Below, piece by piece: positions 1,631-34,468 of a stretch of DNA of 64,000 nt (position 1 is the first letter of the stretch; each line of letters opens with the position of its first letter). Location of the stretch: the NCBI GenBank assembly GCA_964036045.1, contig OZ038379.1, positions 14,136,001 to 14,200,000 of the forward strand. The letters are read 5' to 3'. The position numbers were made by a program, and so were the translations under genes. The notes beneath the pieces were generated by a model. The model was given only the letters and a program-made list of their open reading frames with translations. It ran no database searches and had not been told where the DNA came from. This DNA comes from Eutreptiella sp. 'Long Island Sound 2002' (taxonomy: Eukaryota > Protista > Euglenida).

Positions 1631-1698
1631 GTTCCACGTGCCACGCTCCCTCGGTAATGCCCGTGCAGCCACACACCACTGCAGCGCGTGGTATAACA

Positions 1699-5293: not shown

Positions 5294-5295
5294 GC

Positions 5296-6285: not shown

Positions 6286-6473
6286 AACCGTGCAGCAGGG
6301 CACGCACAGTGCAGTGTAGTGCACAGCACCAAGCAGTGCGGCACCACACAATAAGCACTGATGGTGCAGCGCGGCACGCAGGGTGCAGTGGGCCCACGAG
6401 ACCCTGTGTGACTGCGCGCAGGCGTCGGCAAGGCAGTGTCGGCCAAGTGCGAGAGTGCACTGGTCCGGCTATG

Positions 6474-6583
6474 CCACAACACACTTACGCACAGCGCGCA
6501 CACAACACACACAGCCCAGCCCGTTTACCTGTACCCGTGGGTAGACATCCCGGCCTTTTGCCTTTTGGTAACAGCGCCTTCGG
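6474..6583 (+). mobile_element. Second, about 110-bp copy of the LINE-B 3' terminus
   Basis: CCGTTTACCTGTACCCGTGGGTAGACATCCCGGCC...GGTAACAGCGCCTTCGG is near-identical to 5006-5067 and is again followed by (CACAA)n. Confidence 0.9.
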
Positions 6584-6710
6584 CACAACACAACACAACA
6601 CAACACAACACAACGCAACACAACACAACACAATGCAACACAGCACAGCACGGCACAACACAACACAACACAACGCAACACAACACAACACAATGCAACA
6701 CAACACAACG
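6584..6710 (+). repeat. (CACAA)n microsatellite
   Basis: Direct reading. Confidence 0.96.
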
Positions 6711-12846: not shown

Positions 12847-13456
12847 GTACTGGACGGCCCCCCTGGACTGCATCGACGGGCTGTGCGCTTTCCTCTCCGT
12901 CGCCGGGCTGTTCTTCGTCTGGACCAAGACGTTCCGGGTCGTGCGGGTCATGCGGCTGCTCACGCACATGGAGGGCCCGCGGCGGGTGGTGGTGGCCCTG
13001 GCCGCCTCTCTCCCGGTCGTGTCGGGCATCGTGGTGCTCATCCTCCTGCTCTGGTTCCCCGCCGCCGTCATCGGCGTGCACCTCTTCCAGGGCCTCTACT
13101 GGACCTGCAGCCGCGTGCCCTACGTCGCGGAGGCGGCGGAGCTGCCGGAGGGGCAGGCGGACTGCGCGGCGCACTGGGTGCGGATGCTGCCCAACTTCGA
13201 CAACTTCTTCACGGCGATCCGGACGGCGCACATCCTGAGCACAGGGGAGGACTGGACGCGCATCATGTGGAGCAGTATCGACCGCGTGGCGCCGGGGGGG
13301 GCGCGGGTCCCGGACTCGCACCTCTTCTACGGGCTGTACTTCGTGATCTTCTACTTCTTTGGGGGGCTGATGCCGATGCAGATGGTGGTGGGCGCCATCG
13401 TGGACCACTTCAACTGCCGGGACGCGAGGGCCATGTTGATGACGGCGCAGCAGCAG
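12847..13456 (+). CDS. Channel exon: domain III S3-S6
   Basis: Acceptor TTCCGCAG| (phase 2). YWTAPLDCIDGL (S3), KTFRVVRVMRLL (S4), NFDNFFTAIRTAHILSTGEDW (pore, filter E), FYGLYFVIFYFFGGLMPMQMVVGAIVDHF (S6). Ends MTAQQQ at a GC donor. Confidence 0.93.
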
Positions 13457-13484
13457 GCGTGTGCCCCTCCCCCGGCCTCCCCCT

Positions 13485-13660
13485 TTTATCGACCCCCACC
13501 CCCCCCTCCCGGACCCCTCGACACCAACGCTGCGGGGGTTGGTGTCTAGAACTGAGTTGCAGACCCCCCCGTGGTCTCGTCTCCTCTCGTCTCGTCTGCT
13601 CTCGTCTCGTCTGCTCTCGTCTCGTCTCGTCTGCTCTCGTCTCCTCTCCCCTCGTCTGGT
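13485..13660. repeat. Short dispersed element abutting (CTCGT)n, copy 2
   Basis: Matches 11704-11880; starts about 30 bp after the GC donor. Confidence 0.88.
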
Positions 13661-14954: not shown

Positions 14955-15582
<628 letters not shown>

Positions 15583-17313
15583 GTTATTGTTATTGTCTGA
15601 GCGGTGTATGTTTAGGGAGGTATTCCCCAAGGGAGAACGGCAGTCACCTCCCGTATGACGGCGTGAGCTATATGTGCCACGCGCTCGGGAGGACTACGCA
15701 CCCCCACCGCCGGCCCCCGTACCTCGTACTGGCCCCTTTAGGCGGCCGCGGGGTGGCTTGCCCGCTGCTTTTGCCGGTGAGGGAAGACTGTTCCGAGAGC
15801 CGGCACTGCTTCGGTTCTCTCGGACTACATTGATTTGATGTTGGGTGATAGGTATTTCTTGGGGTGGGTGAGTATGCTTCTCGCCTTTGGGACTTGGGTG
15901 ATTGAATTTTGCTGCATATAGTCAGTGGTCGTGGTTTGGTGCTCGGGTTGTTACTCTGTTGGGGATTCTGATTTTTTTTTTTATGGCATGACATTGTGCA
16001 TTATTCATTTTCACACTCGATTCACATCATGCTGCTTTTGCTTTCTTATGGATGGGCGGTGGGTCATAGTCTGAGCATGTATATTGGGGTTGAGAGAAGG
16101 ATGGGGGGTTTTGCCTGCTTTCGATTGATGCATTGAGGATTACGGGCATGACATGTCAGGAAGCATCGCACGCATTGCACATTGAACATTGAAGGCATGT
16201 GAGCATATGAGCATCGTCTGTCATTCTTCGAGGTTTGAATCAGGCACTTGTATTGTTTTTGAGTTAGTGGGTCAGCTTGGCGGTTGGCAGATGGGGATTG
16301 CATCAGAGAGAAGACGGGAGGGACATGAGAGACATTCTTTCAGCATCTGTTTCTATCACTGGAGTGAGTCGGCGGGTCTATGGAGTAGGGAGAGGACGAA
16401 TCAGATTCTGACGGAGGTGACATGCTTCTTGAGCATTCAGCGAGTCTGGTACATTGGCACATTCGTTCTGAGGGCGTCGTCTATTGGCATTGACTCTGTG
16501 AGATTGGCATGCAGTGGGTCAAATCAGGTGGAGTTGCAACATTTCTTTTGATAGCGGAGAGCACATTTCCAGTTCTTTGGTACTTTTGTACACAATTCTT
16601 TCATCGGACTTGGGTGTGTTGATTCTTGTAGAGGATCTCTAGCATCAATCGACAACGGATGAGATGATTCGGATGGGGTTGCAACATTTCTTTGGCATGC
16701 AAGATTCTGTCCCTGATTCTTTGACTCACTTGTGCTTAATTCTTTCACAGGGCTTGAGGGCATCAGGCACTTGTGTTGTTTTTGAGTTTGTGGGACAGCA
16801 TGCCGATTAGCAATGAGAGTTTGCATCAGGAGGAGGATGGGCACATGGGAGGCATTCTTTCTGCACCTGTATCTGTCACTGGAGTGGGTCAGCTGGCTTG
16901 TGGAGTGGGGAGTGGACAAATCTGATGGAGGTGTCATGCTTCTTGAGCATTTAGCGTGTCTGGTTCATTGGTACATTCGTTCTGGGGGCATCGTCTATCG
17001 GCACGGACTCTGTGAGGTTAGCACACAGTGGGTTGAATCAGGTGGGGTTGCAACAGCGGAGAGCACATTTCCAATTCTTTGGTACTTTCGTCAATCGGCA
17101 ACGAAAGAGATGAATCGGATGGGGTGGCAACTTTTCTTTGACATGCAGGATCTTGACCCTGATTCTTTGACACACTTGTGCTCGAATTCTTTCACAGGTC
17201 TTGAGGACATGAGTTCTTTTTCAGATCAGTGGGGGGAGCAGCATTGGTTAGCAAGAGATGGGTTAGAGCGGAGGAAGGGACCAAGCATGAATTCATTCGC
17301 AGAGTGAGTTTCT

Positions 17314-20300
17314 TTACTCTGAGTCCCAGTACTCCGAGTCGTCAGATTCTAGGATTGACTCTGGGGCAGATTCGCTGGCGGAAGATGAGACTTCATCCCA
17401 ATTGGGAGGTGGCGGCTCAGGGTCGTGTCGTTGATCGTGTGGATTACATGGCCATTCGTCTTGTAGCAGGACAAGCGTGAGTTTGGGTGCTAGAGAGATA
17501 AGCAGTTCTCTGCTGAACATGATGTACAATTCACCTGTGGCACGAAAAGTTATCATGCTGGTTCTGATTTGCTCGTTCTGCGGGGACATCATGGAGATGT
17601 ATACTGCTCGAGGATCATGTTCAGGTCTAGGGCAGGCAATGCACGCATGAAAGGGTGTGGGGTTGAGTGAGGGAGGAAGCAGATTCAGAGGGACTGGGTT
17701 TAACGCTTCCTGATGAGGTTGTGCACTGCGGCCTGCAAAATTGTATGCTGCAGCAATGACGCAGAGATTCCATTGCGGGCTGAGCACTGGCCATCCTACT
17801 GGATCTGATTCTTTCAGCAGGTTCTCTCTCCGGATCAGTGGAGGCCAGCGTCGTCTTCTTCCCAGCCCATTCAAATACTTTGCACTCAAGGTGACCGCCT
17901 CCTCGGTTGATAGAGAAGCTTCTTTTGATCGCAGCACTATTCCTGACCATGTGATGCATGTACTCAGAGCGGACCATTGATGTGCATTTTCAATGAGGAA
18001 ATCTGGTACCAAGCCCCATTCTTGTTGTTCTCCTTCTTGATGTGTTGCAAAGTGGGCTGGGGATTTCCATTCCACTGTGTGTCCCAATGCTGCTAGATGG
18101 TGAGCAACTTCTGTGAATGACCACATACATAGCATGGGAAGAATTAGACACGACCATTGCATGTGTGTGCCCCATCCTGTGTCCAAAGAGCGGCAGAAAG
18201 CACAAGAGAATTCTTCTTTTGTTCCTTCATGACAGTACGGTATGGTTCGTATCCAGTAGGCCACCGTGAGCCCCTCGTTCGTATACTTTCCTTGAGTGAC
18301 TCCTCTGCGCCATATTACTTTGCTTTTGGGATCTCCGAGATGAAAGTCTGGGCGTAAGGAGCTGTTGTAGGCTTCATCAAGAACATGCACCACGTTAGCT
18401 GCAAGTGTGCCATGATGAAAGCAGAGCATCGTGTCGTCTAGTGATTCTGGCATGGGTACTTGTCCTGCTATTGCATTCTTCAGGGCATGCTTGGCCGTGT
18501 CGTCAGTGTCCTTCTGCCATAACGCGACTTGTGTCTTGCTTTTGGTGTTGTGCTTGGCTGGGATATAGAATTCTGGTACGTGGTTCTCACTCAGGAATGT
18601 GGCGTATTGACGTCGGTAGCCGTCTATCCAGGCACATTTGGAGGGTTTGCCCCCATCTCCTCCGTGCATTGCTGCAAGATTGTCCGAGATGGCTCCAAGC
18701 ACTTGATGTGGGTTGATGTCGTACTTTTCCAGTAGTAGATAGGCAAGAAATTTGCCGCACCACTCTGCCACCCAGCTGCTGCCGCCTTTACATAGCACTT
18801 TGGAATATGCTCTTATGGCTACTCCTTGCTCATCAATCACCAGCGCTGACCACGCATGATCATCTTCTTTCTTGGCCCCATCAGACATCAGGATGATTCC
18901 GCCTCTTGGAGAGTGGATTACTTCGATTGCAATTGGAGATTCTGTAAGGTCGTACGGTAAGTGGAATGAGATGCCGTAGCTGGCCATCCATTGTTGCGCT
19001 GTGATCCAGTCTGGGTGGGTTGGCACTTGCTGTGACGGGTACAGCATGATGGTGCGGATGGTTTCCCTGGTGTAGGTGCTTCTGCTGTTACATGCAGAGA
19101 AGAGACCCTTGATGTATTGCAGCTGGAGGCGGGTGAAGATGTGGGGGACTGCAAAGCCGAGATCGTCTATGCTGGCCCATAGCATCTTGTTGGGGGTGCG
19201 CACCGGGATGCAGAGCGTTTTGCAGGCTATTCTTTTGATCTGTATCTGCTGGGGTTGTACTTGTTCTGCTCGTGCTGGGATGGCAGAGAAGACGTAGTCT
19301 ACCACTGAGATTGTGTATGTGACGAGAATTCGGAGAACTAGTATCAGTGAGGGTTGGAGTCTCCCTAGTGATCCTTGCAGTACTTTGAGGCGTGTGGTGA
19401 ATTTATCAATGGCAGTTTGCGGCTGCTCATTGGGCAGAAGAGGTATCCCTGTCATTTTTAGGCCTGAGCATTGCAGATTGAATTTGTCTTGCATCGTGTC
19501 CACCGTGTCCTCGATGTACTTTAGTTCTCTCGGGTTCTTGGGTTCTACTCCAAATATCTGCACTTTCCTGCATTGAGAAGAACCTCCTGTCGACCAGCAT
19601 CCTTGACTGTAAACATGGAACATGTGGGCAGCGTCTTCCAAGGTAGAGGTGAATCCTCTGCGGTCGTCGCTGTATACAATCTCCAGTACTTTGATGCTGC
19701 TGTTCCACGGGGCAGGGAGGCATTTGAAGGCATGTTCTGGTGCTCTGCTGGAGAGGTCTGATGGGTTGCGCTGTTGACTCAGGACTCCGTTGTGAAACCT
19801 GGTCCTGGCACAGGTGGTGGTTGCGTATAGGCCCACTCCCATGGAGTCACCTTGCGATCCCCCGTGGCGCATGCAGTATGGTTCTGTCAGTCCAAATGGT
19901 GAGACAACATAGATACGAAAGAATCCAAAGAACTGTTCTGCCCAGCGTTCTACTTGAAGCGCTTCTCTGGGGAGTAGTTTGTCCATGTCGTGTCTGATGG
20001 TGTTGCAAAAGGCATTGCTCTCATCCCAGTCGATAATGAACACCTTACCGTTGGTATGGGCATACCACCATGTGAGCCATCTGCAGGTGATCGCGCACAT
20101 CTGGGGTGATAACTGCTTTCTGTAGGCATAGTGAGATGGGGGTGTCCATTGGAACCATTCTGAGCGCTCTTGTTGACGCAGGAAAACGTTGCTGGATTCG
20201 AGACGACGTAGGTAGGGTTCAAGCAGAATGGGTCTGCTATTGGGAATGAGCCAGGAGGGTTTTTTCTTCTTTAGACATAGGTGAAGTACTGCACATAAGA

Positions 20301-22716
20301 GTGGACAGTGACTGCCGTTAGCAAATGCTGCGAGCAGTGTGGAGATGAGTAGCAGACTGAATCCGTCTAGGAGACTCACCAGAGCATGAGGAAGCTGCTC
20401 CAGTGAGGTGGCTTCTGACGATGAGCGACCGACTAGTGCAGTGAGTTCATGGAAATTCGGAGTTTGACCTGCTGCATCGTCGATGGGAAGGCCTGTTCGG
20501 GTTCTTTGGAGTCTGTTCATGTGGGCGATGAAGTCAACTGTATCTTCAGGTTGGTCCGTGTCCAATTTCATGCCTTTCTTGAGGTGCTCATAATCTAATC
20601 GGATTCCCGGACGCCCGCTGTACAATTCCTTGGCTTGACGCAGCATCTCTTCCTGAAATTCTTCTTTCTCCTGTGGAAAATACTTGCCATCAGCACTGAT
20701 TTGGTCCACGACTTGGAATTTGTTCTTTTTAAGTTTGATGGCATGAGTTGTTGCGGATGTAATGGATACTCCCTGCAGTTTTTCCAGTGGGATATGCAGC
20801 TTGGACGCCATGGCCTTGTTGTTTCGGTTTTCCCACCACTGGGTAACTGCCACAGAATTTCTTCCATCATGTGCTTGAAGTGCAGCCGCCATTGCTTTGG
20901 CATCTGCCACCGTCAAGGAGAGGTGTGATTTTCTGCGGGGAATTATACAATCCATTACCAGGAAGTACATGTGCATGACGGCTGTGGGGGACCGTTCTGT
21001 AATGTTGGCCCATGCGAATAACAGAGAGCAGATGTTCGCAATCTCTTGAAATTCTTTCTGGTTCAGGTGCCGGAAGTCGTACCTGCGTTGAGATGGATCT
21101 GCCGGCTTCATCTGGTCGCTGTCCATCACCAGGAAATACTGCTGCACTCGGTGAGAGCTGAGGCCTGGCAGTTGGTCTCTGGTGCACGCTACACATGGAG
21201 TACTGTTGTGGGTGAACATCCCATCGATTTCTTTCTCTGAGAGTCCTTTTTTAGTCAGCACTTGATTGGTGGGGTGACCTGTAGCGTACGGACAGTTGAA
21301 TTCTTTCCATTCTTTCGAGAGTGTTTTCTTGAGCCAGCCACGCTTGCTGCGCATAACGTCATCATTCAGATCTCCCTGTATGAATGTGATTGTTGCTTTT
21401 GCGTTTGAGAGGAATGATGCCACAGCCTTGCTGTGTTCTTCTCTGCTGATTGGGCAAATGCCGGGAGGGAAGTGGACTGATGCTACCGCTATGGAAGTCG
21501 GTAGTCCCGGGTTAATGTGGGCGCAGAGGGAGTGCTTTCTGACATGTGTCTTCCATTTCTTTTTCGAGAGTCTTCTCGTGTGCACCAGGATGACCAGGCC
21601 GCCGCCTTTGTATGGATCTGAGGCAACGTGTTGATAGGGGAGTCCGTTGAGCCATCCTTCGGGCATGAGAGCCCACGTTTCTTGAAGACAGACAATGTCC
21701 GGCATTCCCAGGATTAGGTAACAGTACAGCTGATGCAGCTTCTTCTCGAGGCTTCCGCAATTGATGCCCATGATCTGTAAGTCCACCCAGTCTGGGATGT
21801 CTGGGTTGGTCGCGGGTGGTATCATGGTGCTGAATTCTTGGTGCATTTGTGCATATGCACGTTGAATGTGCGGGTGAACATCATTGGGAAGTGAGGGTTT
21901 GCATGGCCACATTCTGCTGTCGGTGATCGGGAAAACTCCTTCGAGCTTGAATGTTCCCAAGTGTATAATGCTGTGTGTCGCCATTTGAGCTGAAATACTT
22001 TCTTGCTTGGGAAGATGCCAGCAGGCACTGATGTGGGGCTGATTCTGTTGATGGGGGGTTGTCAGATGCAGCTTCATGTGGTAACCTGACAGTTTTCCAC
22101 ATTGACGACATTCCGGGCCGTCTGACCATGAAATTGTGTCCTTTGGGTCGTATTCTTGGGCGCAGATCATGATGTATCCGCCTTGAGATTGGAATTGTTG
22201 TACCCGTGTTCTTTCTCGAAAGAGTCGGGCATCAGGTGAGATGATTGTCTGGCACCAGAGGAGTAGGACAGAGTCGCAGGACACTATTGGGTAGGACGGG
22301 GTGAAAGTCTTGTTGTACTGGTTCTCTGATTCCATGTATGCTTGAAGCCATGCATGGATGATTCGAGTCTGACGGAGCACTACTGCTGGGGGAACTCCTT
22401 CTAGATTGGGGATTCTTGTGATGCGATACAGCAGCTCGACTGCTGCCTCTTCTTCTGGGGTTGCTTGATGACAGGGTATGCCATACAGTGCTGGGTTGGG
22501 GCAGTTGCAAAGGGCTGTTGTCTCCTGTGAAGCTGGAGTTCCACATCGTGTACATACATGTAGTAGGGTGGTGTGTTCTGGGTTTGCTCTGGTGTTTTGA
22601 GATGGTGGCTGGAGGGGGTCATGATTGAGATCTGTTGAGCATTTGGTGGACCAGTTGTGTAAGTCTGTCAGGGATGCATCAGCGGTTCTCTTGCTGAGTG
22701 AACCGTGTGGTAGCAA
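17314..22716 (-). CDS. LINE-A ORF2 polyprotein: N-terminal Cys/His region, APE endonuclease, reverse transcriptase, RNase H, Cys-His knuckle, C-terminal extension
   Basis: APE: IMGINCGSL, DIVCLQETW, GGGLVILV, IQGDLND, IDGMF, SSHR. RT: RPILLEPYLRRL, HYAYRKQ, GGSQGDSMG, IVYSDD. RNase H: MSDGA, VAEW, ISDN, KDTDD. Knuckle CAFC..HMQWSC. No internal stops. Confidence 0.95.
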   Translation of the reverse strand: MLPHGSLSKRTADASLTDLHNWSTKCSTDLNHDPLQPPSQNTRANPEHTTLLHVCTRCGTPASQETTALCNCPNPALYGIPCHQATPEEEAAVELLYRITRIPNLEGVPPAVVLRQTRIIHAWLQAYMESENQYNKTFTPSYPIVSCDSVLLLWCQTIISPDARLFRERTRVQQFQSQGGYIMICAQEYDPKDTISWSDGPECRQCGKLSGYHMKLHLTTPHQQNQPHISACWHLPKQESISAQMATHSIIHLGTFKLEGVFPITDSRMWPCKPSLPNDVHPHIQRAYAQMHQEFSTMIPPATNPDIPDWVDLQIMGINCGSLEKKLHQLYCYLILGMPDIVCLQETWALMPEGWLNGLPYQHVASDPYKGGGLVILVHTRRLSKKKWKTHVRKHSLCAHINPGLPTSIAVASVHFPPGICPISREEHSKAVASFLSNAKATITFIQGDLNDDVMRSKRGWLKKTLSKEWKEFNCPYATGHPTNQVLTKKGLSEKEIDGMFTHNSTPCVACTRDQLPGLSSHRVQQYFLVMDSDQMKPADPSQRRYDFRHLNQKEFQEIANICSLLFAWANITERSPTAVMHMYFLVMDCIIPRRKSHLSLTVADAKAMAAALQAHDGRNSVAVTQWWENRNNKAMASKLHIPLEKLQGVSITSATTHAIKLKKNKFQVVDQISADGKYFPQEKEEFQEEMLRQAKELYSGRPGIRLDYEHLKKGMKLDTDQPEDTVDFIAHMNRLQRTRTGLPIDDAAGQTPNFHELTALVGRSSSEATSLEQLPHALVSLLDGFSLLLISTLLAAFANGSHCPLLCAVLHLCLKKKKPSWLIPNSRPILLEPYLRRLESSNVFLRQQERSEWFQWTPPSHYAYRKQLSPQMCAITCRWLTWWYAHTNGKVFIIDWDESNAFCNTIRHDMDKLLPREALQVERWAEQFFGFFRIYVVSPFGLTEPYCMRHGGSQGDSMGVGLYATTTCARTRFHNGVLSQQRNPSDLSSRAPEHAFKCLPAPWNSSIKVLEIVYSDDRRGFTSTLEDAAHMFHVYSQGCWSTGGSSQCRKVQIFGVEPKNPRELKYIEDTVDTMQDKFNLQCSGLKMTGIPLLPNEQPQTAIDKFTTRLKVLQGSLGRLQPSLILVLRILVTYTISVVDYVFSAIPARAEQVQPQQIQIKRIACKTLCIPVRTPNKMLWASIDDLGFAVPHIFTRLQLQYIKGLFSACNSRSTYTRETIRTIMLYPSQQVPTHPDWITAQQWMASYGISFHLPYDLTESPIAIEVIHSPRGGIILMSDGAKKEDDHAWSALVIDEQGVAIRAYSKVLCKGGSSWVAEWCGKFLAYLLLEKYDINPHQVLGAISDNLAAMHGGDGGKPSKCAWIDGYRRQYATFLSENHVPEFYIPAKHNTKSKTQVALWQKDTDDTAKHALKNAIAGQVPMPESLDDTMLCFHHGTLAANVVHVLDEAYNSSLRPDFHLGDPKSKVIWRRGVTQGKYTNEGLTVAYWIRTIPYCHEGTKEEFSCAFCRSLDTGWGTHMQWSCLILPMLCMWSFTEVAHHLAALGHTVEWKSPAHFATHQEGEQQEWGLVPDFLIENAHQWSALSTCITWSGIVLRSKEASLSTEEAVTLSAKYLNGLGRRRRWPPLIRRENLLKESDPVGWPVLSPQWNLCVIAAAYNFAGRSAQPHQEALNPVPLNLLPPSLNPTPFHACIACPRPEHDPRAVYISMMSPQNEQIRTSMITFRATGELYIMFSRELLISLAPKLTLVLLQDEWPCNPHDQRHDPEPPPPNWDEVSSSASESAPESILESDDSEYWDSE

Positions 22717-22779
22717 GTTATCCGTGTAACGTATGATTAGTGCAGAGCACGATGTGGATTTGGGGAGGGCGAGGGGGAT

Positions 22780-25371
22780 TCATTTCTTCTCCTGCGTTAC
22801 TCCTGGTGCCGCTGGGATAGAGGCACTGGACGCCGTAATTTGGGCTGGAGGCAAGTCTTCTCTTCGTGGCGTGGATGAGCGTGCTGCTCGATTCTGCGAC
22901 TGTGGAGCATTGATACGGGCTGTTTCCGCCGCTGGACGTTGTTGATCCGGTGTTGGATGAGCCATAGGGTGCATGTTCTCGTATAGGTGTGGTTGATAGT
23001 GTGAGAATGATGGTTGCATGTGGGGCATGGGTGGATGATGAGGAGGGTACCATGGGTACATAGGACTCTGAGGTGGATACGGGTTGTACTGGTGTCCTGG
23101 AACTATTCCTGGTGTTGCTGCAGGTGGGGGTGGTGGCGGGGCCCCCGTGGCTTGTGCTGGTTTGCCTGTTGATTCTGTCTTCCTTCTTTTCGCTGGATTG
23201 GGTGGTTCATATGGATCTCCAAATTCATTCTTTGACCGTACTCCAATGTACTTGTTGTTGCCGATGTGGAGCCATACTTTTTCTTTGCCCTGTGCTAGGG
23301 CATTCCATGCATGGGGATTCACACTGTTGAGGAACCAGAATCCCTTGTGGATGGCTGCAGGTTGCAGCCCTGAATTAAATCCGAAGTGCTTCTCGATCTC
23401 GTTCTCAAGGTCCTTGTACGGCACATCTTCGATTTGGGTAATCATCAGTGTAAGTCCTTGACCTTGATGCTGAGGGTATTGAGGTGGTTGCTGCACGGGT
23501 GGTTCTGGGGGTTGATTCGTTGGGGGGAAAGGCAGCAGTGAGTTCTTGGGTGTTGTGGGTTGCATATGCGATGTGCTTGATCTTTGTGGGGGATTTTGTT
23601 GGTATTGCTGGTACTGTTGATGTTGTTGAGTTGGCATCGGGGTTGGGGTTTGTGGCTGGTATTGGGTAGCTGCTGTAAGGGGTTGATTTGGCTGTGGAGC
23701 TGTGGTGACTGAGTGGTGAGGATTCTCATCTTCCGGAACCATCCATTGGTTGATCCAGTCTGGAGTTTGCACATTCACTGTGGCACCTAGATTCTCTAGT
23801 TCAGTCTGCACCGTGTCAAAGTCTGCGACGTTGGTGGTGGTGGCAAGATTTCTTATTACTGCGTTCCACCACTGGGCTGCGGTTTGAGTGGACATCAGAC
23901 TCAATCGGGTGTTCTCTTCTGTATGAAATGAAAAAGCCAGCATCGTCGCCGACATGGTCCAATCTGCATCTTGTGGGATGGATTGCCACATTTTCTTTAA
24001 TTCGCTGATTCTTTTGCTGGTCTCAGGGGAAGAGCCGACAGTTCGTCCTTGCATAAATCTCAACCAATCTTGCAGGGCCTGAGTTACTGCTGGGATGTCG
24101 CTCGATAGGGCACACATGTGGGCTTTGAGTATGGCCCCGAGTTGCTTGCACTTTTGTGCCTTTTGGAAGAAGTTGAGGATTTTCGCAGCCGCTTTGACTG
24201 GTAGTAGGCGCATGTACAGCTGACGTGCTGCAACTTCGCATTCACTGTCATCCAGTGCTTCGCATTTTTCTTGTACTCTGGCTATGATGTCTTCAAAGTT
24301 GGCGTAGGTGTCGTTGGTTGCAGCTTGTGAAGGGGGATGTAGTCCTGGCATTCTTTGATCTTGGAATGAGGGCCCTGGCTGATTTTTGGGTACGTAGGAT
24401 CGGCTGACTTTGTTGAAAGCAAATTTGTTGTGATCTGTGGAGTATCTCTTGGGAGGTTCATAGTCCCTTAGACCTGAGTGGAGCATCAAGTCCGCTGTTG
24501 AAGAAATTGATGGGGGTTTGATGGCTGTTGTTCTTCGATTCTTTGCTGCTGGTGGAGCTTCCAGTGGCACATCAAGATGAGCATCCAGATTGATAATGAA
24601 CGGTGGATGGTTTCTTCGAGGGGATTGAGCACGGGATGGAGATTGCCCTCCGGGGGATGGAGCACGTTGTTGAGAGCCGGCACGATTTCCTTTGGGTTGG
24701 GGTGTGCCTGGTTTCAGGGAGCGAAGTGTAGTGGTGATACTGGCCCTCAACGACTGGTCAGACATGGCTTGTTTGTGCGGCTTGCCATCAATAAAGTTCG
24801 GGGACCATGGGGGCAGCTTGTGTTGAGAAGTGGCCCATGCTGCATATAGGGTTGCCCAATAGAATAGCCAGAAAGTGGATTCCGACAGTTGCTTGTCTCC
24901 TTCGATAAGTTTGCCGTCTGCCTCCAGCAACCGCTGAAAATTGTACGGATCCTCATTGATGAGTTTATCGAACTTTTCTTTGGCATTTTCTGATTCCAAA
25001 TAATGCGACATTCTGTCCAGGATGTCACACCATTCTTCGTTGGACGCATTCTTGAGCCATTCTTGAGTCTGCATTGTCAGGTCTTTGATTGTAAGCCACA
25101 TGTAATCCGGAAATTCTGCAACCAGTAGAGTCAGGTCTTCCTCGGAGATCGATGCGCGCATCAAGGAGGCGAACATTCCGAAACATGTTGCAAGGCTGGT
25201 GGTCATCGATACTTCTGATACTTCAACCTTGGATGGCCAGTGCGTCACTACTGCTTTCAGGTCCCCATCGGAATAGTAGATTCGGGTGAAGTACCCCGCG
25301 GTTGTGGGATCTACATACGCACGCTGTCGTTCTGGTGCAAGGGCAATGAATTCTTCAGAGTTCATGGTCAA
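22780..25371 (-). CDS. LINE-A ORF1 (863 aa), Gag/ORF1-like, with a C-terminal RRM-like segment
   Basis: Long ORF directly upstream of ORF2. Q/P-rich linkers and a segment LTLMITQIEDVPY..FWFL..W..RSKNEFGDPY. Function inferred from position. Confidence 0.8.
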   Translation of the reverse strand: MTMNSEEFIALAPERQRAYVDPTTAGYFTRIYYSDGDLKAVVTHWPSKVEVSEVSMTTSLATCFGMFASLMRASISEEDLTLLVAEFPDYMWLTIKDLTMQTQEWLKNASNEEWCDILDRMSHYLESENAKEKFDKLINEDPYNFQRLLEADGKLIEGDKQLSESTFWLFYWATLYAAWATSQHKLPPWSPNFIDGKPHKQAMSDQSLRASITTTLRSLKPGTPQPKGNRAGSQQRAPSPGGQSPSRAQSPRRNHPPFIINLDAHLDVPLEAPPAAKNRRTTAIKPPSISSTADLMLHSGLRDYEPPKRYSTDHNKFAFNKVSRSYVPKNQPGPSFQDQRMPGLHPPSQAATNDTYANFEDIIARVQEKCEALDDSECEVAARQLYMRLLPVKAAAKILNFFQKAQKCKQLGAILKAHMCALSSDIPAVTQALQDWLRFMQGRTVGSSPETSKRISELKKMWQSIPQDADWTMSATMLAFSFHTEENTRLSLMSTQTAAQWWNAVIRNLATTTNVADFDTVQTELENLGATVNVQTPDWINQWMVPEDENPHHSVTTAPQPNQPLTAATQYQPQTPTPMPTQQHQQYQQYQQNPPQRSSTSHMQPTTPKNSLLPFPPTNQPPEPPVQQPPQYPQHQGQGLTLMITQIEDVPYKDLENEIEKHFGFNSGLQPAAIHKGFWFLNSVNPHAWNALAQGKEKVWLHIGNNKYIGVRSKNEFGDPYEPPNPAKRRKTESTGKPAQATGAPPPPPPAATPGIVPGHQYNPYPPQSPMYPWYPPHHPPMPHMQPSFSHYQPHLYENMHPMAHPTPDQQRPAAETARINAPQSQNRAARSSTPRREDLPPAQITASSASIPAAPGVTQEKK

Positions 25372-25852
25372 ATTCTTTCAGAAAACACTGATTGACATTG
25401 AAGGCATGCATATCTGATATCTGGAAATGAGTTTTTTGGAGGGGCGTGGTTCACTGTTAACGGTACTACGTGGGGGGAGTGTTGCACTGACTTCTGCGTG
25501 AGCACATGTACAGTCATGCACTTTTGATGGTCTGTTGATCCTTCCCTATTCGTTATATTGTTGTTGAGCAAACTGTGATCACTTGCAGCATGCACGTACC
25601 TGGTTGCGATCTTTGCATCTTGTTCCTGTGCTCTCCTTCTGGATTAGGGTCAGTGCTTTATTCGATTTCCCTTCGTGCCTTGATACTTGCATTGGGTCCG
25701 GGAGTGTGTGCTGCGGTGTGGAGAGGGCTTTACCTTGTCTGTTTGTCTTTTGAATAAGAAAGATTCGATATGACTTTGGATGCTGAGTGTGTTTGGAGAT
25801 TTTTTTTTTTTTGGCTTGATTAATTCTCGGTGAGATTTTGACATTCTTTTCT

Positions 25853-26502
25853 TTATACTGAGTTTCTGTACACCGAGAACATGATGTGCAAGTCATCTGT
25901 GGCATGCAGAGTTATCATATCTGTTCTAATCTGCTCCTTCTGCAGGGACAACATGGCGAAGAATGTTGGTTGGGCGCCGTGTTCAGAATCTCGGGCAGTG
26001 CTCGGGCAGTGCACGCATGAGAGATTGTGGGGCGAGGTGAGAGAACATGTAATATCGTTGGGACAGGATTCATCACTCCCTGGTGTGATTGGACATTGCA
26101 GGTTACAGAATGGTACGTTGTGATTTTGGCCCTGAGATTCCCATGTGGTCTTGGTGTGGGGTGTCCTACTGAATCTGATTCTTTGAGCTGGTTCTCTCTC
26201 CGGACTGGTGGAGGCCACCGTCATCTTCTTCCCAGTCTCTTCAGATACTTTGCTCTCTGTGTGATCGTTTCCACGATTGATCTAGATGTTTCTTTTGAAT
26301 TCCACTCTTTTCCTGACCATGTGATGCGTATACTCTGGGCGGATTGTTGATCTGCATTCTTGAAGAGGAGACCATGTATCATGCACCATTCTTGATTGTT
26401 CTCCTTCATTGAGTGTCGCAAGGGGGGCTGGGGAATTCCTGTTCCACTGTTTGTTCTGATAATTGCAGATGGCGGGTCACTCCTGTACAGGACCACGTAC
26501 AT
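25853..26502 (-). pseudogene. Decayed paralogous copy of the ORF2 C-terminus (may extend to about 27280)
   Basis: ITWSGKEWNSKETSRSIVETITQRAKYLKRLGRR vs ORF2 ITWSGIVLRSKEASLSTEEAVTLSAKYLNGLGRR. EQIRTDMITLHATDDLHIMFS vs EQIRTSMITFRATGELYIMFS. Stops and frameshifts present. Confidence 0.85.
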
Positions 26503-27681
26503 GGCATGAGACGAATTAAGTATGATTATTGCACGTGTTTGTTCTATTATGTGTTCAAGCGCAGCAGAAAAGTGAGGGCTGGGTGTATGCAGAACCTTGA
26601 CATTACTTGTATGTTCATGGCAGTTATTGATTTTACTGGTGATGTGATTCTCTGGGTTGATGATTGATCATCTCTGGGTGACTAAGCAGGGCAGAAGGGC
26701 ACAGGCAGATGTACTTCTGGCATAACTTCTGGTGCTTGTGACATTGTCTGTGGATGCAGATGAATCGGGTCCGATGCTTTCTGTCCGGGGGGTTCACCGT
26801 TGCCACGGTGGACGTATTTGCGGGTCCAAAGGGCTGCAGCATGATTGCATGAGAGCAATGAGACGGGTCATATATTGCGGGCTGCAGCATGATTGCATGA
26901 GAGCAATGAGACGGATCATATATTGCGGGTGGGAAGTCCGTTGGCATTTTGAAAATTTTACTTGAGAGTGCATGCATTTTGGCCGTATGCTGAGGTTATT
27001 GTGGATACTGCTGATTTACTCATCCTGGGCGTGAGCGGGGTTCAGTGCAATTGCAGGTGCGGCATGATTGACGTGTGATACATCTCCACTTCGCAGGTGG
27101 GATACTGATCCGATTCCAGTGTCGCTTGGAAAGCATTTGCATCTGGAAGTGATGCGTTCAATAGCAAAATGAGGGGGGTGCTCAACATTCATTCTTTCTT
27201 CAGGTATGCGGATGCTGGGTGATGCTCGATTGGGGGGTGGAGAGAAAGATTGTACCTTTCCCGGCAAATAGACTGGCATGGCCAGTACGGGCAGGTTGAT
27301 CCGTCCATTGTGGCAGCACCAAGTTGAGTTGATGGACGCAAAAAAAATTTTATTTATGCATCACTGTTTCTGTTACTGTGTTCTCTGAGGACTCGTGCGT
27401 ACGAGATTCTGATATGTGAAGGGACATGAATTGTCACAGATCCGATCAGATTCTTTTTTCGGCTGTTGGACGTCCTCGGATCATTTGCTCCCAGATTGGG
27501 GTTTAGAAACATGAAACTTGGGTGCCTCCTAGTTGCATACACCGCGAATTGCTTGAGGATCATGGGGTGCGCACGCATGCTGATTTCTGAGTGAATTCTG
27601 AATTCTGATTGCATTTACATGAGCATAGATTGATTCGGTTTCATTCTTACGCATCTGGACTTGTTCTGATTCTCTGCATCC

Positions 27682-28032
27682 TTAACTCCTCAACTCCCAC
27701 CACTCATCACCATCTGGGGTCAGCGCAGCGTTTGTGAGGATGAAGTTCTTCTCCCGTGACTGTATTGCACTCGGATAGCCGATGATGGATCCCATGAACA
27801 CACCATGCTTCCAGGTGGAAGCTTTCGTCACCAATAGCACCAGGTTCGGGCAGCGATCCCCAAACAGAAAGACACAGATGGGCACATCCTTCGGATTCTC
27901 CCACTCAGGGTCGATCACAGGGCACTGAGATGCAGGCGTCACGTATGGCGCATTCGGATGTGTAGCCTTGCGACCACAGTCTGGGGTCCACGGCTGGCCA
28001 ATCAGTGGGGTGGTCCAATCAATCGCGGTCAT
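27682..28032 (-). CDS. 116-aa ORF whose ATG overlaps the stop of the upstream ORF1 paralog (ATGA)
   Basis: Minus strand AAG AAA GAA TGA / ATG ACC GCG. Complex, non-repetitive sequence of unknown function. Confidence 0.4.
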   Translation of the reverse strand: MTAIDWTTPLIGQPWTPDCGRKATHPNAPYVTPASQCPVIDPEWENPKDVPICVFLFGDRCPNLVLLVTKASTWKHGVFMGSIIGYPSAIQSREKNFILTNAALTPDGDEWWELRS

Positions 28033-30095
28033 TCTTTCTTCTGCGGGTCATCCATGTGCAGCTTGACCGTCAGCGTGACCGGCACCGTCAGCTCACTCTC
28101 CTTGCCGCTCCGGCTTTTGCCACTGCTCTTGCCGCTTTTGCCACGGTACTCTTGGGTATGGGGGTAGCGGTACTGAGGTTTGCCTTTGCCATACTGCCGA
28201 TACGCGGGAACACTCGGGTCGCGTGCGTCCGGGATTCCTTTTCCACGGGGATCTCGGGGAGTGAACTGTCGGGCATGCTCATCAGAAGCCGAGGTCGGAG
28301 GTCGAGAAGCCGAGGTCGGAAAAAGCGTGTCGGACAAGTTGCGGAGTCGCAACACCAGGTCATGTGCTTCGTCCGAGGCAGGCAGATGGCTCGCCATGTG
28401 AGGCTCAGCGCTGTGCGCAGCAGGTTCGTTGATGGGACTGCGGTTGCTCTGAGATCGATACTCATGCTGGCTGTGCTGTTCGTGACGAGCATACGGATCT
28501 TGTCTGTCAAACCGATCGTATCGCTGTTGTCGGGGGCGTGCCTGTTGTCCTTGCTGTTCGGCCACCACGTCCCAGCCTCCAGTGGATGGGAAAACCCCAG
28601 TCTGTCCCCAGCCGGACGGTTCCGGTCCTTGTTCCGGTGCCTGTTCCTCGTGAACTCCGTGATCGTATCGGCTTCGCCTGGGTTCATACCTGCCGTACTC
28701 AGAAGGGACAGGGGGACTCATCCTTCGGTGCTTGGCAGGAGGCTCGTCAATTTCTTCTTCATCACGATGTTGGGTGTATGCAGACCGTCTGGATTCCATC
28801 CGACCTTCAGTGCGAACGTCGCAATCTCGAGGATGGCGGTAATCGCTGGGGCCATGAGCCGAGTCTCGGGAAACGGTGCTTGCATGAGAGCCAGGACGCG
28901 CACGGGTGAGGACTCGTTCACGTTCACGTTCTCGGTCACGTTCACGTTCACGTGCACCTTCACGTTCACGTGCCAGTTCCCGTTCATGCTCGCGCAGGAG
29001 TGCTCGTGCTGCTGCCACTGCGTGCTCAGAGATAGGTTCTTTCACATATTCTCGCTCGAGTTCGTGAGCTGGTGTCCTGTCATGTGCTCTGGGGCGCTCG
29101 CGGACGACATCTCGATAGGATTCATGTGCACGTTCCCGCACCGGTTCTCTGGTGTATTCTCGAGTCCTTCCACGCATGCGGTCTGGGCTGTAGTCTCGAT
29201 CGAAGCGTTCGCGGGCGTGTTCGCGAAAATACTCTCGAGCTGGCGTGTGGGGTGCTCCACGAGCAGAGTACGTCGAGGGCGAGGTACGCGGCAGGCCACT
29301 CTTGCCTTTTCCTTTGCCTTTGATATGTTGAGTGTACGGCGATCCATCCTGATGCTGGGATCTGATGCGGAAAAAATCACCGTCCTCTTCCAGTCGCACA
29401 CGCAGTTCGTAAGTATTCGCGGAGTCCGGGCACATTCGTTGCCAATTTTCTTGCGTCGTCTCGACCATCCAAAATTGGTGCCTTGTCGCAGCCTGTGGAA
29501 TGATGGCACCCAGTCTTCGCCTGATGATGGAACTGATTTCGTTGTAATTGTCTTCAGAGATATCCTGTACTCTCAGCACGATCGGATTCGCAATATCATC
29601 ATCATCATCCGACAGATTCTGGGGGGCGATGTGCACATACTCCTGGCCCCGGGCAATACCAACGGATGGAGGATTGCTGATTGCTGATTGCATGGAGGCT
29701 TGCTGATGGCTTTGTTCAGGACTCTGTGCTGGGGCTGGTTCTTGGTACGGTTTCAGTCCTTTTTGGGAGGACGTATAGTCGGGAGACTCTGGGGCTGGAT
29801 CTTGGCTCTGGTTCGGTCCTTCCTGGGAGAGCATGTGATCGGAGGACTTTGGGGATTCTGATAGCAATTCTCGGAGAGCCCTTTGTACTTCATCTTCTTG
29901 TTGCTCCGGTTCAGATTCTGGTGCTGGATCTTGCGCATGGGTTTGTTCAATCTCTGGTCTGGGATCTCTGGTCGTCAGGTTTGGGAAACTCCTCCATCGC
30001 CATTGTGGCTCCAGCGGTGTCAGAGGAGAGGCGGCAGACGTGGCATCAGAGGAGGGGACAGAGGAGGGGACAGGTTCTGATCCTGACCTGGACAT
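28029..30095 (-). CDS. Second ORF1-like gene of LINE-A (688 aa; R/E-rich, with an RRM-like segment paralogous to ORF1)
   Basis: IVLRVQDISEDNYNEISSIIRRRLG..AATRHQFWMV..W..RIRSQHQDGSPY aligns by eye with ORF1 LTLMITQIEDVPYKDLENEIEKHFG..AAIHKGFWFL..W..GVRSKNEFGDPY. Has an ARERERDRERE-type low-complexity tract. Confidence 0.72.
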   Translation of the reverse strand: MSRSGSEPVPSSVPSSDATSAASPLTPLEPQWRWRSFPNLTTRDPRPEIEQTHAQDPAPESEPEQQEDEVQRALRELLSESPKSSDHMLSQEGPNQSQDPAPESPDYTSSQKGLKPYQEPAPAQSPEQSHQQASMQSAISNPPSVGIARGQEYVHIAPQNLSDDDDDIANPIVLRVQDISEDNYNEISSIIRRRLGAIIPQAATRHQFWMVETTQENWQRMCPDSANTYELRVRLEEDGDFFRIRSQHQDGSPYTQHIKGKGKGKSGLPRTSPSTYSARGAPHTPAREYFREHARERFDRDYSPDRMRGRTREYTREPVRERAHESYRDVVRERPRAHDRTPAHELEREYVKEPISEHAVAAARALLREHERELAREREGARERERDRERERERVLTRARPGSHASTVSRDSAHGPSDYRHPRDCDVRTEGRMESRRSAYTQHRDEEEIDEPPAKHRRMSPPVPSEYGRYEPRRSRYDHGVHEEQAPEQGPEPSGWGQTGVFPSTGGWDVVAEQQGQQARPRQQRYDRFDRQDPYARHEQHSQHEYRSQSNRSPINEPAAHSAEPHMASHLPASDEAHDLVLRLRNLSDTLFPTSASRPPTSASDEHARQFTPRDPRGKGIPDARDPSVPAYRQYGKGKPQYRYPHTQEYRGKSGKSSGKSRSGKESELTVPVTLTVKLHMDDPQKKE

Positions 30096-30154
30096 ATTGC
30101 AGATGCCCTAGTGTTCGTTGTGAGATATTGGATGAATGAGGACTTTTGTCAGTG

Positions 30155-31195
30155 GTATGTGGCAGCGAGCACAAGGAGCTGGCACCGTACCAGTTCTCCA
30201 GACACGCACGGGATTTTTGACGAGGTACGATCGAATTCTCGGAGAGTTCTTTTTTTTTTTTTTTTTTTAGGCAGCAAGCACAAGGAGCTGGCACCGTACC
30301 AGTTCTCCAGACACGCACACGCATGGGATTTTTGACGAGGCATGATTGAAGTCTCGGAGAGTTCTTTCTTTTCATCAGAATTTATGAGGCAGCAGGCACA
30401 AGGAGCTGGCACCGTACCAGTTCTCCAGACACGCACGGGATTTCTGACGCGGCACGATTTATGTCTCGGAGAGTTTTTTGTTATCATCAGAATGTATGGG
30501 GCAGCAAGCACAAGGAGCTGGCACCGTACCAGTTCTCCAGACACGCACGGGATTTTTGACAAGGCACGATTGAATTCTCGGAGAGTTCTTTGTTTTCATT
30601 AGGAGTTATGATGCAGCAAGCACAAGGAGCTGGCACCGTACCAGTTCTCCAGACACGCATACGCACGGGATTTTTGACGAGGCATGATCGAATTCTCGGA
30701 GAGTTCTTTCTTTTCATCAGAATTTATGGGGCAGCAGGCACAAGGAGCTGGCACCGTACCAGTTCTCCAGACACGCACGGGATTTCTGATGAGGCACGAT
30801 TTATGTCTCGGAGAGTTTTTTCTTATCATCAGAATGTATGAGGCAGCAAGCACTAGGAGCTGGCACCGTGCCAGTTCTCCTGACGCGCACAGGATGTTTG
30901 ATAAGGCACGATTAATTGTACGGAGAGTTCTTTCTTTTCATCAGATATTATGAGGCAGCAAGCACAGGGGGCTGGTACAGAACTGGTTCTCCTTATATGC
31001 ACGAAATCTTAGGATATGATCGAAATTCTCTGAGATTTGGGGGCTTGGAATGTGTTCTCTGAGAGTTTTTGTTGTCATCAGGAATCATATGGCAGCAGGT
31101 ACGTGATGGTAACATACTTTTGTGGTGATCGATTGCACTTATTAACAAGCACATGGAGCTGGCACCGAATCAGTTCTCCGGCATGCATGGAGAGT
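30155..31195 (-). repeat. LINE-A 5' tandem monomers (about 112 bp, 8-9 copies, with an about 342-bp higher-order trimer); putative internal promoter
   Basis: GGAGCTGGCACC at about 30175, 30284, 30403, 30515, 30626, 30745, 30856 and 31156, plus a variant near 30968. Confidence 0.9.
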
Positions 31196-31408
31196 TGAAT
31201 GCAACTGAGAGATAACTAAACAGTACCTTACCATACGAGGAGAGATTATGGCTCCACCGGTTTTCTGCACACACCGCTCGCAACTTTGAGCGATTGCCCC
31301 ACCGGCGCCAGGAGCCATACTTGGGCCGGCCTGACGGGAAGTGGCAGGAACAACAGGACAGTCCACAGACAACAACTGCCATTGGACTGCCCCCCGCCAC
31401 CCCCAGTT

Positions 31409-32352
<944 letters not shown>

Positions 32353-33579
32353 TGGGGAAACGGGACTCGAGTGACCCCCAACCCTTGAAAATGACTTCTT
32401 CCCCGGCCTTTCAGGGGATTTTTGTAATTTTTTTTGTGCTTTTGCGCAGCCCATCTTTCGCAGTTTTGACTGCTGCAAGTGCCACCTTTTTACACAATTT
32501 GTATGTTTTCTCGGGACTTCGGACAGGCACCAATTCTCAGCCAAGCGCCATTTGAGTGGTTCAGGGGGTGAGGCGGGTAGAGGTAGAATGATCGGGTGAC
32601 CTCCTGGGCCCTTCTGAACAATTATCTGTCCCTTCCAGCTCGCGGCGTCAACGCCTGAGCGCCGAGGACGGGGTATGCCCCCTCTGGGGTTCCACCTCGG
32701 CACCCTCTGGTTGGGCGGCCGCTGAGCCATTGAGCTCGTTCTGAGAGGGTGCAATGGCAGGGGCCCAAAACGCTTGCAAAGGGGTTTGGAGGGCTGGGAG
32801 GTGGGTGGGTTTGGCGAGGCCCAGTCCAATGCGTGGCCCCCTGAGGGAGCGCGGATTCCCCTGCAATGGCGAGGAAGTGTAAGCAGACCCCCCATTAAAG
32901 GCCCTGAACTGACAGTCTGCGAGTTCACAAGGGCAAGGGTCTTCGCATGAGCATTGGAGGCACCGCTGGTATGCCCGCAGCTTGCCCCCCCCCCCCCCCC
33001 CCCTCGTTGCGCTAGCATGACTTTATCTCAGCACAGCGCCTGGGGTGACGACCATCGTCAGATTATGGCTAAGCAATACGACCCGGTCTGACCTTCGTTC
33101 TTCTGACCACAGGGTTGACCCCCGTCCGACCCTCGTTTTGCCCGCCCTTGTGCAAGAAGGATTGGGGGGGGGGGGGGCTCCTGAGTGGACATGGCTCCCT
33201 CTCGTTTGACACGCCCAAAGATGCCTGCGCACTGCTAAAGGACTTGCATGTACAAGATGGAGTTGCCATTCCTGGGGAGAAGGGACGACGGTATGGAGTG
33301 ACGGTCTACCGGAACGGCACAGAGTGACGGTGTAGAGTGGCGGTACAGACAACCGATGTGACTGCATGCAGTGACGGGAAACCGTGAAGGTGGGGGTATA
33401 GAGTGACCGTGTAGAGCAACGGTATCGATTGGGAAGCCACGCTTCGCGTGCCCGCATTTCCTTGCAACCTGTCACCCCCCCCCTCCTGTGTGATGTGTGC
33501 GCTTCCCGAAGCTCTGCGGGAGCTTGGGCCGTGGGTTGTGCACCTCCGTCCTCTGCCTCTGCCTCTGCACTCTCTGCAG

Positions 33580-34077
33580 GAGTGGGTCATGAACATGCAA
33601 CTGATGCGCTTGACGGACGGGGAGTACATCCACCACGCGCAGCAGCCCCGCAACCGCTTCCGCCGAGTGATCTTCCGCATGGTGACGTCGATCTGGTTCG
33701 ACAAGGTGGTCGCCGTCTGGATCTTCATCAACGTGGTGTTCCTGTCGCTGGAGCACTACGGGCAGTCGGACACGTGGGAGGCGGTCCTGGAGTGCGCCAA
33801 CTACGTGTTCCTGGTGCAGTTCCTGGTGGAGGTGCTGCTGAAGCTCATCGGCCTGGGGCCCAGGCCGTGGGCGCGGAGCTACTTCAACATCTTCCAGGGC
33901 GTGACCGTCATCCTGATCGTCGTCTTGTGGGCCGTGCAGACCACCGCCCTCAACCCTGTCCGGCTGCTGCGAATCGCGCGGATGTTCATCATCGCGAACT
34001 ACGCCGTGAACATGAAGATCCTCATCACGTCGCTGCTGCTCTCCCTGTCGGCCGTGTGCAACATGCTGCTGCTGCAG
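33580..34077 (+). CDS. Channel exon: III-IV linker and domain IV S1-S4
   Basis: Acceptor CTCTCTGCAG| (phase 0). EWVMNMQLMRL..QPRNRFRRVIFRMVTSIWFDKVVAVWIFINVVFLSLEHYGQ, FLVEVLLKLIGLG, NPVRLLRIARMF. Donor CAG|GTCAGC. Confidence 0.94.
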
Positions 34078-34134
34078 GTCAGCGATGTGCATAAGAACCG
34101 GTCAACCGGTTGGTGGGGGTGTGTTGGGGGGCGG

Positions 34135-34468
34135 GGAAACACAGCGAGGCAGGCTATGGACGGCCTGTGGACAGAGGCGCGTGGACAGCAAAAACAGTCA
34201 AACGACCCCGCCAACAACCAGCACATCCTCAATACGCCAATTATTGGGCGCCGCTGACGCGCAAACGGCACGCCATGCCACATCCAGCACAGCCCCAACA
34301 CACCAACCACTGGGCTCCGCGAGCGAACGCGGAAACGATACCAGCAGGAGCACCGGCCGCAGCGGCCGACAGAAAGCAGCGACCCAACGCAACATGCGAA
34401 GGGAAGAACGGGTGACTGTCCAGGGCCCCGTAAAGAAACAACAACCCGACGGAATGTCACACAGGGGG
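34135..34468. repeat. About 330-bp SINE-like dispersed repeat, copy 1
   Basis: GGAAACACAGCGAGGCAGGCTATGGACGGCCTGTGGACAGAGGCGCGTGG...GGAATGTCACACAGGGGG is shared with 56185-56482. Confidence 0.9.

Follow-up and report, generated by a model that had tools for sequence, protein, structure and literature searches.

The window analysed here, a 64,000-nt stretch of contig OZ038379.1 of the euglenid Eutreptiella sp. 'Long Island Sound 2002', carries on its minus strand, from position 31407 down to 15579, a retroelement of 15,829 bp that belongs to the long interspersed nuclear elements (LINEs). Its features are collected in Table 1 in window coordinates; element coordinates (e) follow from e = 31407 - window + 1, and microsatellites and monomers were located with Tandem Repeats Finder. 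Unique sequence begins directly after an upstream (CA)n array and comprises a conserved leader, a run of tandem monomers, a large open reading frame (ORF) designated ORF1a, a piece of a host gene, a non-coding spacer that holds the decayed remains of an ORF2 C-terminus, a second large ORF (ORF1b), the enzyme gene ORF2 and a 3' untranslated region (UTR). The last of these ends in (CAATAA)3, and a second (CA)n array closes the element. The array on the 5' side is in all likelihood either the microsatellite that was targeted or a tail left by an earlier insertion. The same order and anatomy had been proposed in a sequence-only reading of this DNA, and they were borne out on the minus strand except for the labels given there to a 116-aa ORF and to a segment supposedly shared by ORF1a and ORF1b. 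The 3' end described in that reading could be read directly at the junction, and its statement that no microsatellite separates the upstream unit from the downstream one also stands, as self-BLAST of the region showed an A13 run only. Besides the similarity of the relic to ORF2 and the monomers, the internal repeats detected by self-BLAST consisted of an old duplication of about 0.5 kb in the 3' UTR (window 15849-17213, e14110-14646 against e14547-15169, 70% identity), and there were no others.

Table 1. Features of the composite element and of the microsatellites that border it, in window coordinates.
Feature	Position	Strand	Basis
(CA)n array, 5' side of element	31408-32351	- ((TG)n on plus)	Tandem Repeats Finder
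5' leader, ~110 nt, conserved, with long stable hairpin	31300-31407	-	alignment and folding
5' UTR monomers, 7.2 tandem copies of 112 bp	30156-30975	-	Tandem Repeats Finder
ORF1a, 688 aa	28029-30095	-	
116-aa ORF holding the PEPCK piece	28032-27682	-	
GTP-PEPCK fragment, ~335 bp, sense	27688-28022	-	Pfam
Non-coding spacer	25372-27681	-	many stops in all frames
Decayed relic of ORF2 C-terminus (~ORF2 aa 1506-1735)	25874-26573	-	tblastn, self-BLAST
ORF1b, 861 aa from ATG or 863 aa from TTG	25365 (ATG) or 25371 (TTG) to 22780	-	
ORF2, listed ORF of 1800 aa	22716-17314 (frame region 17314-22779)	-	
3' UTR, 1.7 kb, ending in (CAATAA)3	15579-17313	-	
(CA)n tail or target microsatellite	14957-15578	- ((GT)n on plus)	Tandem Repeats Finder

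Judged from its sequence, the element is a LINE of the apurinic endonuclease (APE) type whose ORF2 is predicted to combine APE and reverse transcriptase (RT) with RNase H and a CCHC motif. A full HMMER scan with ORF2 residues 300-1400 collected 540 relatives at E<=1e-3, and in an alignment of ten sequences the columns of the APE, the RT (SDD, the catalytic box being YSDD in the window), the RNase H-like region (D, E, D, H) and the C-terminal CCHC were invariant or nearly so. A profile of the ORF2 relatives matched, among solved structures, the human L1 ORF2p endonuclease (E 9e-11), the R2 RT (7.5e-8) and, weakly, RNase H (0.19); the profile was needed, since ORF2 alone matched no solved structure. 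As a single sequence ORF2 reached the Pfam family Exo_endo_phos at E 0.0024, below the cut-off that its relatives pass, and the relative P0009 matched RVT_1 at 4e-6, with 27.1 bits against a Pfam gathering cut-off of 29.6. The sole named distant match (E 2.8e-6) was to a Pol protein of Drosophila teissieri in which Pfam recognizes RVT_1 and RNase_H. The APE-RT-RNase H composition suggested in the sequence-only reading was thus recovered, the first two by profile and the third by its invariant D/E/D columns together with the weak structural match. As expected of a LINE, the element lacks long terminal repeats (LTRs), its 3' end is fixed and carries a simple-repeat tail, and its dispersed copies are 5'-truncated to varying extents.

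ORF1b is predicted to carry a domain resembling an RNA recognition motif (RRM) near residues 640-720. Its AlphaFold2 model (predicted local distance difference test, pLDDT, 60) shows an RRM-like predicted topology, the top Foldseek matches are almost all RRMs (E >= 0.026), and the Atlas features point to RRM families. Neither ORF1a nor ORF1b matches any Pfam family, Transposase_22 of the L1-clade ORF1p type included. Two long ORF2 relatives encoded in this organism (26-27% identical; loci L009 and L010) have a single ORF1 of 698 or 739 aa directly before ORF2. The N-terminus of ORF1b has homology to both of these proteins (E 5e-5 and 1e-7), neither of which is similar to ORF1a. A single ORF1 of the ORF1b type in the relatives indicates that ORF1b is the ancestral first gene of the group and that ORF1a is an addition.

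Copies of the element were sampled through their ORF1a or ORF1b proteins, from which loci of the same organism were fetched; searches with both proteins gave matches exclusively from one ENA assembly. One fetched locus, L008, is the window's own (element 100% identical, flanks 99.7-99.97%), so the other loci of that assembly are paralogous copies in one organism. Nine independent copies were recognized, all with ORF1a, the spacer with its relic, ORF1b and ORF2 in the same order and with the same junctions. L004 (98.1% identical to the window element) and L012 (96%) are full length, L007 (97.4%) covers e91-15436 and L011 (92-97%) e1-15435. L002/L003 (85-93%) is full length, lacks the host gene piece and bears a 2-kb insertion near the end of ORF2. 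L006 (92%) begins at e ~1859, L005 (78-92%) at e ~1430, adjoining (CA)n, and L001 (71-85%), which stops in early ORF2, at e ~1400. A different 5' UTR, at first read in L005 and also in L001, was rejected for L005, which is truncated beside (CA)n. The 5' truncations of these three copies all fall inside ORF1a, more than 13 kb from the 3' end, so that reverse transcription must pass ORF1b and the spacer to enter ORF1a. All full-length copies have identical first bases after (CA)n, the 3' junction (CAATAA)3(CA)n is identical in the window, L004 and L003, and (CA)n lies on both sides of the insertions in the window, L004, L002/L003, L011, L012 and the truncated L005. The window flanks match no other copy except the same-locus L008. 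The sequence-only reading had named copies beginning at ORF1b as the sign of a one-off nested insertion; there were 0 among those sampled, and sampling through ORF1b brings no bias toward copies with the upstream module. The common order, exact ends, unrelated flanks and truncations within ORF1a indicate that the composite is reverse-transcribed as one unit. The earlier proposal of a three-gene element of 15.8 kb that mobilises as a whole, to be recognized by further copies between different flanks, is in this respect confirmed.

The family is numerous, with 45 ORF1b and 104 ORF2 proteins after clustering at 90% identity. Word depth in the runs of two organisms is in the thousands, even across the upstream module and not below that at the start of ORF1b. 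ORF1a, ORF1b and ORF2 are all open in the window, L007 and L011, and the family is probably still active. Window 31407-15579 is thus very likely a full-length, apparently intact copy of a multi-copy LINE family that transposes over its whole 15.8 kb, with ORF1a as an added gene.

Several loci have a complex neighbourhood. Some copies stand head to tail: in L003 (16838-21098) two (CA)n arrays and 1.5 kb separate the first copy from the 5' end of the next, and in L011 (1-3617) about 2.4 kb, presumed to be (CA)n, lies between the element and the 3' end of another copy upstream. Immediately upstream of the (CA)n of the L002 copy, more than 7 kb of satellite DNA is built of 96-bp units (1-7056). 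Secondary insertions interrupt ORF2 in L006 (14126-18549, 4.4 kb) and L003 (12287-14359); that of L006, with an ORF that weakly matches RNase_H, is probably another retroelement. In the window, Ion_trans fragments flank the element on the plus strand (12938-13537 and 33492-34256, from gene calls on L008), and this copy probably sits antisense within an intron of a host channel gene.

The coding status of the three genes was assessed by aligning the copies to the window frame, counting differences per codon position and calculating the Nei-Gojobori ratio of nonsynonymous to synonymous divergence (dN/dS), with the spacer read in three frames as control. The ratio was 0.20-0.44 for ORF1a, 0.15-0.37 for ORF1b and 0.15-0.35 for the 5' half of ORF2, whereas the spacer control was flat (0.23/0.23/0.21, pseudo-dN/dS 0.5-1.2). 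In ORF1a, window and L001 differ by 0.139/0.145/0.352 at the three codon positions, and overall the third-position differences are 2-4.6 times those at the first and second, even at dS 0.4-0.7, a pattern absent from the neighbouring spacer. Constraint is strongest in the one folded domain (aa 166-260; 0.054/0.053/0.248), next strongest at the C-terminus (0.068/0.052/0.174) and lower in the N-terminal and central parts. These ratios understate constraint, because some of the differences between copies arose by neutral decay once they had inserted. ORF1a, ORF1b and ORF2 have evolved under purifying selection as the family diversified, and the spacer has not. That ORF1a retains a coding-type pattern in spite of neutral decay indicates that it has been a working gene throughout the history of the family, which goes beyond what the sequence-only reading had claimed when it suggested the dN/dS comparison.

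The ORF1a product is mostly disordered, rich in Arg, Glu and Lys, with a single conserved folded domain at about residues 166-260. The window, L004, L007 and L011 have its frame open, and in some other copies it is broken. Among 5.8 billion proteins it has two relatives, both encoded within copies of this element. Atlas features of the domain give a weak pointer to small beta-grasp domains, with scores at chance level. The sequence-only reading had assigned ORF1a and ORF1b a shared RRM-like segment, a claim for which we found marginal similarity: BLASTP aligned 86 residues at E 0.039, profiles restricted to the domain gave E 0.048 in hhalign, and a hidden Markov model (HMM) of ORF1b-type proteins reached ORF1a at E 0.13, all in the same register. 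The profile-profile comparison proposed in that reading gave no meaningful match when the full-length profiles were used. The BLASTP alignment brings most of the predicted secondary-structure elements into register, except that one strand in the ORF1b model lacks an ORF1a counterpart, and both proteins carry a short RS-x4-G-x-PY string. Paralogy of ORF1a and ORF1b is therefore suggestive and not established. On the opposite strand to ORF1a runs an antisense ORF of 560 aa (plus strand 28005-29687), and gene callers choose the antisense frame in several copies (in L004, 5578-6879); it is probably a by-product of repetitive GC-rich sequence.

Between the upstream genes and ORF1b lies the spacer, with abundant stops in all frames. 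The relic within it, already noticed in the sequence-only reading, is real: residues 1506-1735 of ORF2 match 26573-25874 with 41-50% identity and frameshifts (tblastn E 4e-23), and the DNA is 71.8% identical to ORF2 over 696 nt. In L001, the oldest copy, the relic is 83% identical to the present 3' end of ORF2 and extends about 110 nt past the stop, as against 71-72% in young copies, which fits a start close to the family's own ORF2 followed by unconstrained drift. No closer donor was found among 183 fetched proteins. The relic starts abruptly at about residue 1506 of ORF2, and the 1.1 kb that precedes it after the ORF1a stop has no ORF2 similarity. A 48-bp tandem duplication at 26831-26929 of the spacer is specific to young copies, one unit being absent from L002, L005, L006 and L001. 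The last 60 nt of this otherwise neutrally evolving spacer (25431-25372) are conserved at 93-100%, even in the oldest copies, and are a candidate for an internal translation or processing signal.

The 116-aa ORF coupled to the end of ORF1a, which had been taken for a gene of the LINE, instead corresponds to a fragment of GTP-dependent phosphoenolpyruvate carboxykinase (PEPCK; Pfam PF00821, PEPCK_GTP, E 6.5e-27). Five assembled copies carry this piece (window, L004, L007, L011 and L012). L001, L002, L005 and L006 lack it and have about 8-14 bp instead, with short microhomology at the 3' junction. The PEPCK frame is joined to an ATG solely in the window copy, the other four having 5 additional bp after codon 12, and the ATG that overlaps the ORF1a stop pre-dates the capture as the start of a mini-ORF of 5 codons. 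Contigs from the runs of two organisms show the PEPCK-bearing form at the same depth as the rest of the element, plus a PEPCK-less joint (27687>28029). By these sequence comparisons the piece is a host gene fragment captured and amplified by the youngest subfamily, the 116-aa ORF is a chance fusion, and the frame shows no sign of being kept as a gene. Gene callers break the whole element into many hypothetical genes plus one false PEPCK gene, which matters for annotation.

The 5' leader is 97% identical among six copies, the remaining 5' UTR about 85%, and it folds into a hairpin with a minimum free energy of -59.3 kcal/mol (z -3.9). A ribozyme of the hepatitis delta virus (HDV) type at this end was considered and rejected: Rfam gave zero family matches for the element's 5' end, ribozymes included, even with lax filters, and what is present is a stable hairpin alone. 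A stretch just 3' of the hairpin, which we took to resemble the P1 region of the HDV ribozyme, has no support from any test. L002 has 5.2 copies of the same 112-bp monomer. Mouse L1 likewise has tandem monomers in its 5' UTR, and by analogy those found here are a candidate promoter that may drive transcription. Searches of the window with dinoflagellate and euglenid spliced-leader motifs found none. ORF1b and ORF2 are read in the same frame, with just one TGA (UGA) between them, and the first ATG of the listed ORF2 is its codon 128. The 127 codons before it (22336-22782 region) evolve as coding sequence (0.011/0.022/0.050), which together with the single in-frame TGA fits stop-codon read-through or non-AUG initiation.

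The shared ends and order of the copies, their unrelated flanks and their truncations show that the whole composite is reverse-transcribed from a single RNA by target priming at (CA)n microsatellites. For its expression we picture a cycle in which the monomers would drive one RNA of 15.8 kb, the basic ORF1a protein would act as a second RNA-binding or packaging factor, ORF1b-ORF2 would be translated from an internal start at the conserved 60 nt that precede ORF1b, and ORF2 would be made by UGA read-through. A stronger version, which we hold tentatively and would put somewhat behind its negation, is that of an obligately tricistronic LINE that depends on each of two unrelated first-ORF proteins, with internal entry within those 60 nt. 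ORF1a would in that case come from another lineage or from the host and supply RNA condensation, nuclear entry or counter-defence.

A number of observations weigh against transposition of the composite as a three-gene unit. Copies were sampled through predicted proteins and not by a genome-wide DNA census, so rare copies beginning at ORF1b could have escaped. The truncated L006 and L001 have no (CA)n on the 5' side, and target-site duplications are not readable where both junctions lie inside (CA)n. A full-length transcript was not seen: the RNA consists of short metatranscriptome contigs of 89-98% identity, which cover ORF1a, the spacer and the start of ORF1b and which may come from carried-over DNA or, where they span the PEPCK piece, from the host gene. 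ORF1b lies 2.3-2.7 kb downstream of the ORF1a stop, a distance bridged by a candidate translation route only. As to the added gene itself, the homology of ORF1a to ORF1b is not significant, and its AlphaFold model is poor (pLDDT 56) and has no fold match.

Alternatives to a single transposing unit have to account for the same copies. A one-off nested or adjacent insertion of two different LINEs, with their unity a coincidence, could draw on the relic's protein identity to ORF2 of only about 50% and on the head-to-tail LINE arrays that occur through (CA)n in this genome; it is barely credible, as it is already refuted by nine independent copies with the same junctions and no (CA)n between the units. 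Spread of a composite locus by segmental duplication instead of retrotransposition is suggested by the nearby or tandem position of some copies (L003, L011), and is very improbable given unrelated flanks, exact common ends with a microsatellite tail, graded 5' truncation and divergence from 2% to about 25% with coding-type substitution patterns. Nor is it probable, though here a little more weight may be allowed, that ORF1a is a passenger or upstream ORF without protein function, open by chance or youth. It is largely of low complexity, parts of it are less constrained and some copies have it broken, but the third-position excess holds even at dS 0.4-0.7 and has no parallel in the adjacent spacer.

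The origin of the upstream module is a separate matter. The relic shows that a LINE 3' end once lay behind ORF1a, upstream of ORF1b. To this extent the head-to-tail fusion of two related LINEs proposed in the sequence-only reading is upheld; the relatedness of their first genes is not, since ORF1a lacks significant similarity to ORF1b. At its start the module would have been either what was left of a related LINE reduced to its ORF1 (HAL1-like) or a transduced gene beside a LINE 3' fragment, and read-through transcription from the upstream promoter would have joined it to the full element. Without significant similarity to ORF1b or to the ORF1 of L009 or L010, ORF1a may be a captured gene and not a paralogous ORF1, carried in by 5' transduction when read-through from a host promoter took an old LINE 3' fragment along with the full element, the product still being one unit. 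That the same family took up a host PEPCK piece at the 3' boundary of ORF1a speaks for such a host origin, as do the abrupt start of the relic and the 1.1 kb without ORF2 similarity before it. Yet no host paralog of ORF1a was found among the 5.8 billion proteins, and the marginal similarity to the RRM-like domain of ORF1b recurs in one register by three methods, with secondary structure that mostly coincides. We consider a host-derived ORF1a rather unlikely, and a HAL1-like origin of the module is slightly favoured over a captured gene.

LINEs are usually taken as one- or two-gene elements, limited in size by the processivity of reverse transcription. The present family copies 15.8 kb in one piece, and selection has preserved a third large gene in subfamilies up to about 25% apart. 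If the obligately tricistronic reading is true it would be, to our knowledge, the first LINE shown to gain and keep a further complete sense gene. The family is a natural case in which to ask how LINEs acquire genes and promoters, whether through joining to an ORF1-only derivative or through 5' transduction, and also how far-downstream ORFs are translated and what a second ORF1-like protein contributes. Our literature searches for LINEs that are tricistronic or have two ORF1s found no precedent, which is not proof of none, and in the literature we did not find described a LINE with two different large sense ORFs before ORF2.

Among known systems the closest to the upstream module is mammalian HAL1, a LINE derivative that kept an open ORF1 and lost the enzyme domains of ORF2 (PMC5753468); the module similarly consists of a presumed promoter region, an open ORF1a and a mere decayed stub of ORF2 (aa 1506-1735). 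HAL1 moves alone, with L1 proteins acting in trans, whereas the module is physically joined to a complete element and copied with it: in nine copies it is continuous with ORF1b-ORF2, with no tail after the relic and hence no 3' end of its own. It differs further in that ORF1a is not demonstrably related to its partner's ORF1. Modular replacement of 5' regions is known in LINEs (PMC5753468), and the capture of extra ORFs is documented for LTR elements (PMC5408684). In target choice the family resembles MinoAg1, which targets AC repeats and belongs with Waldo, Kibi, Koshi and Dong to the microsatellite-targeting APE LINEs (PMC3812793), in that separate insertions share one kind of microsatellite, which also forms the end of the element. 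The elements named come from animals and are of ordinary size, unlike the one of 15.8 kb described here, and the likeness drawn is one of target. The PEPCK piece recalls the host gene fragments taken up by TART-A and other telomeric LINEs of Drosophila (PMC7785250, PMC13534243), since in both cases a fragment lies inside an active LINE and is amplified with it. However, the pieces in those elements come from genes of silencing pathways and yield antisense small RNAs, while the one here is metabolic, in sense orientation and without evidence of function. Like L1, I and Tad, the element has an ORF1, here with a putative RRM-like domain, followed by an APE-RT ORF2, with RNase H in some clades, and undergoes 5' truncation. 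L1 measures 6-8 kb and has two sense ORFs, its only described extra ORF being the 71-aa antisense ORF0 of primates (PMC5203782); the element of the window, in contrast, reaches 15.8 kb, has another large sense ORF that selection maintains and includes a non-coding spacer of 2.3 kb in its transcript.

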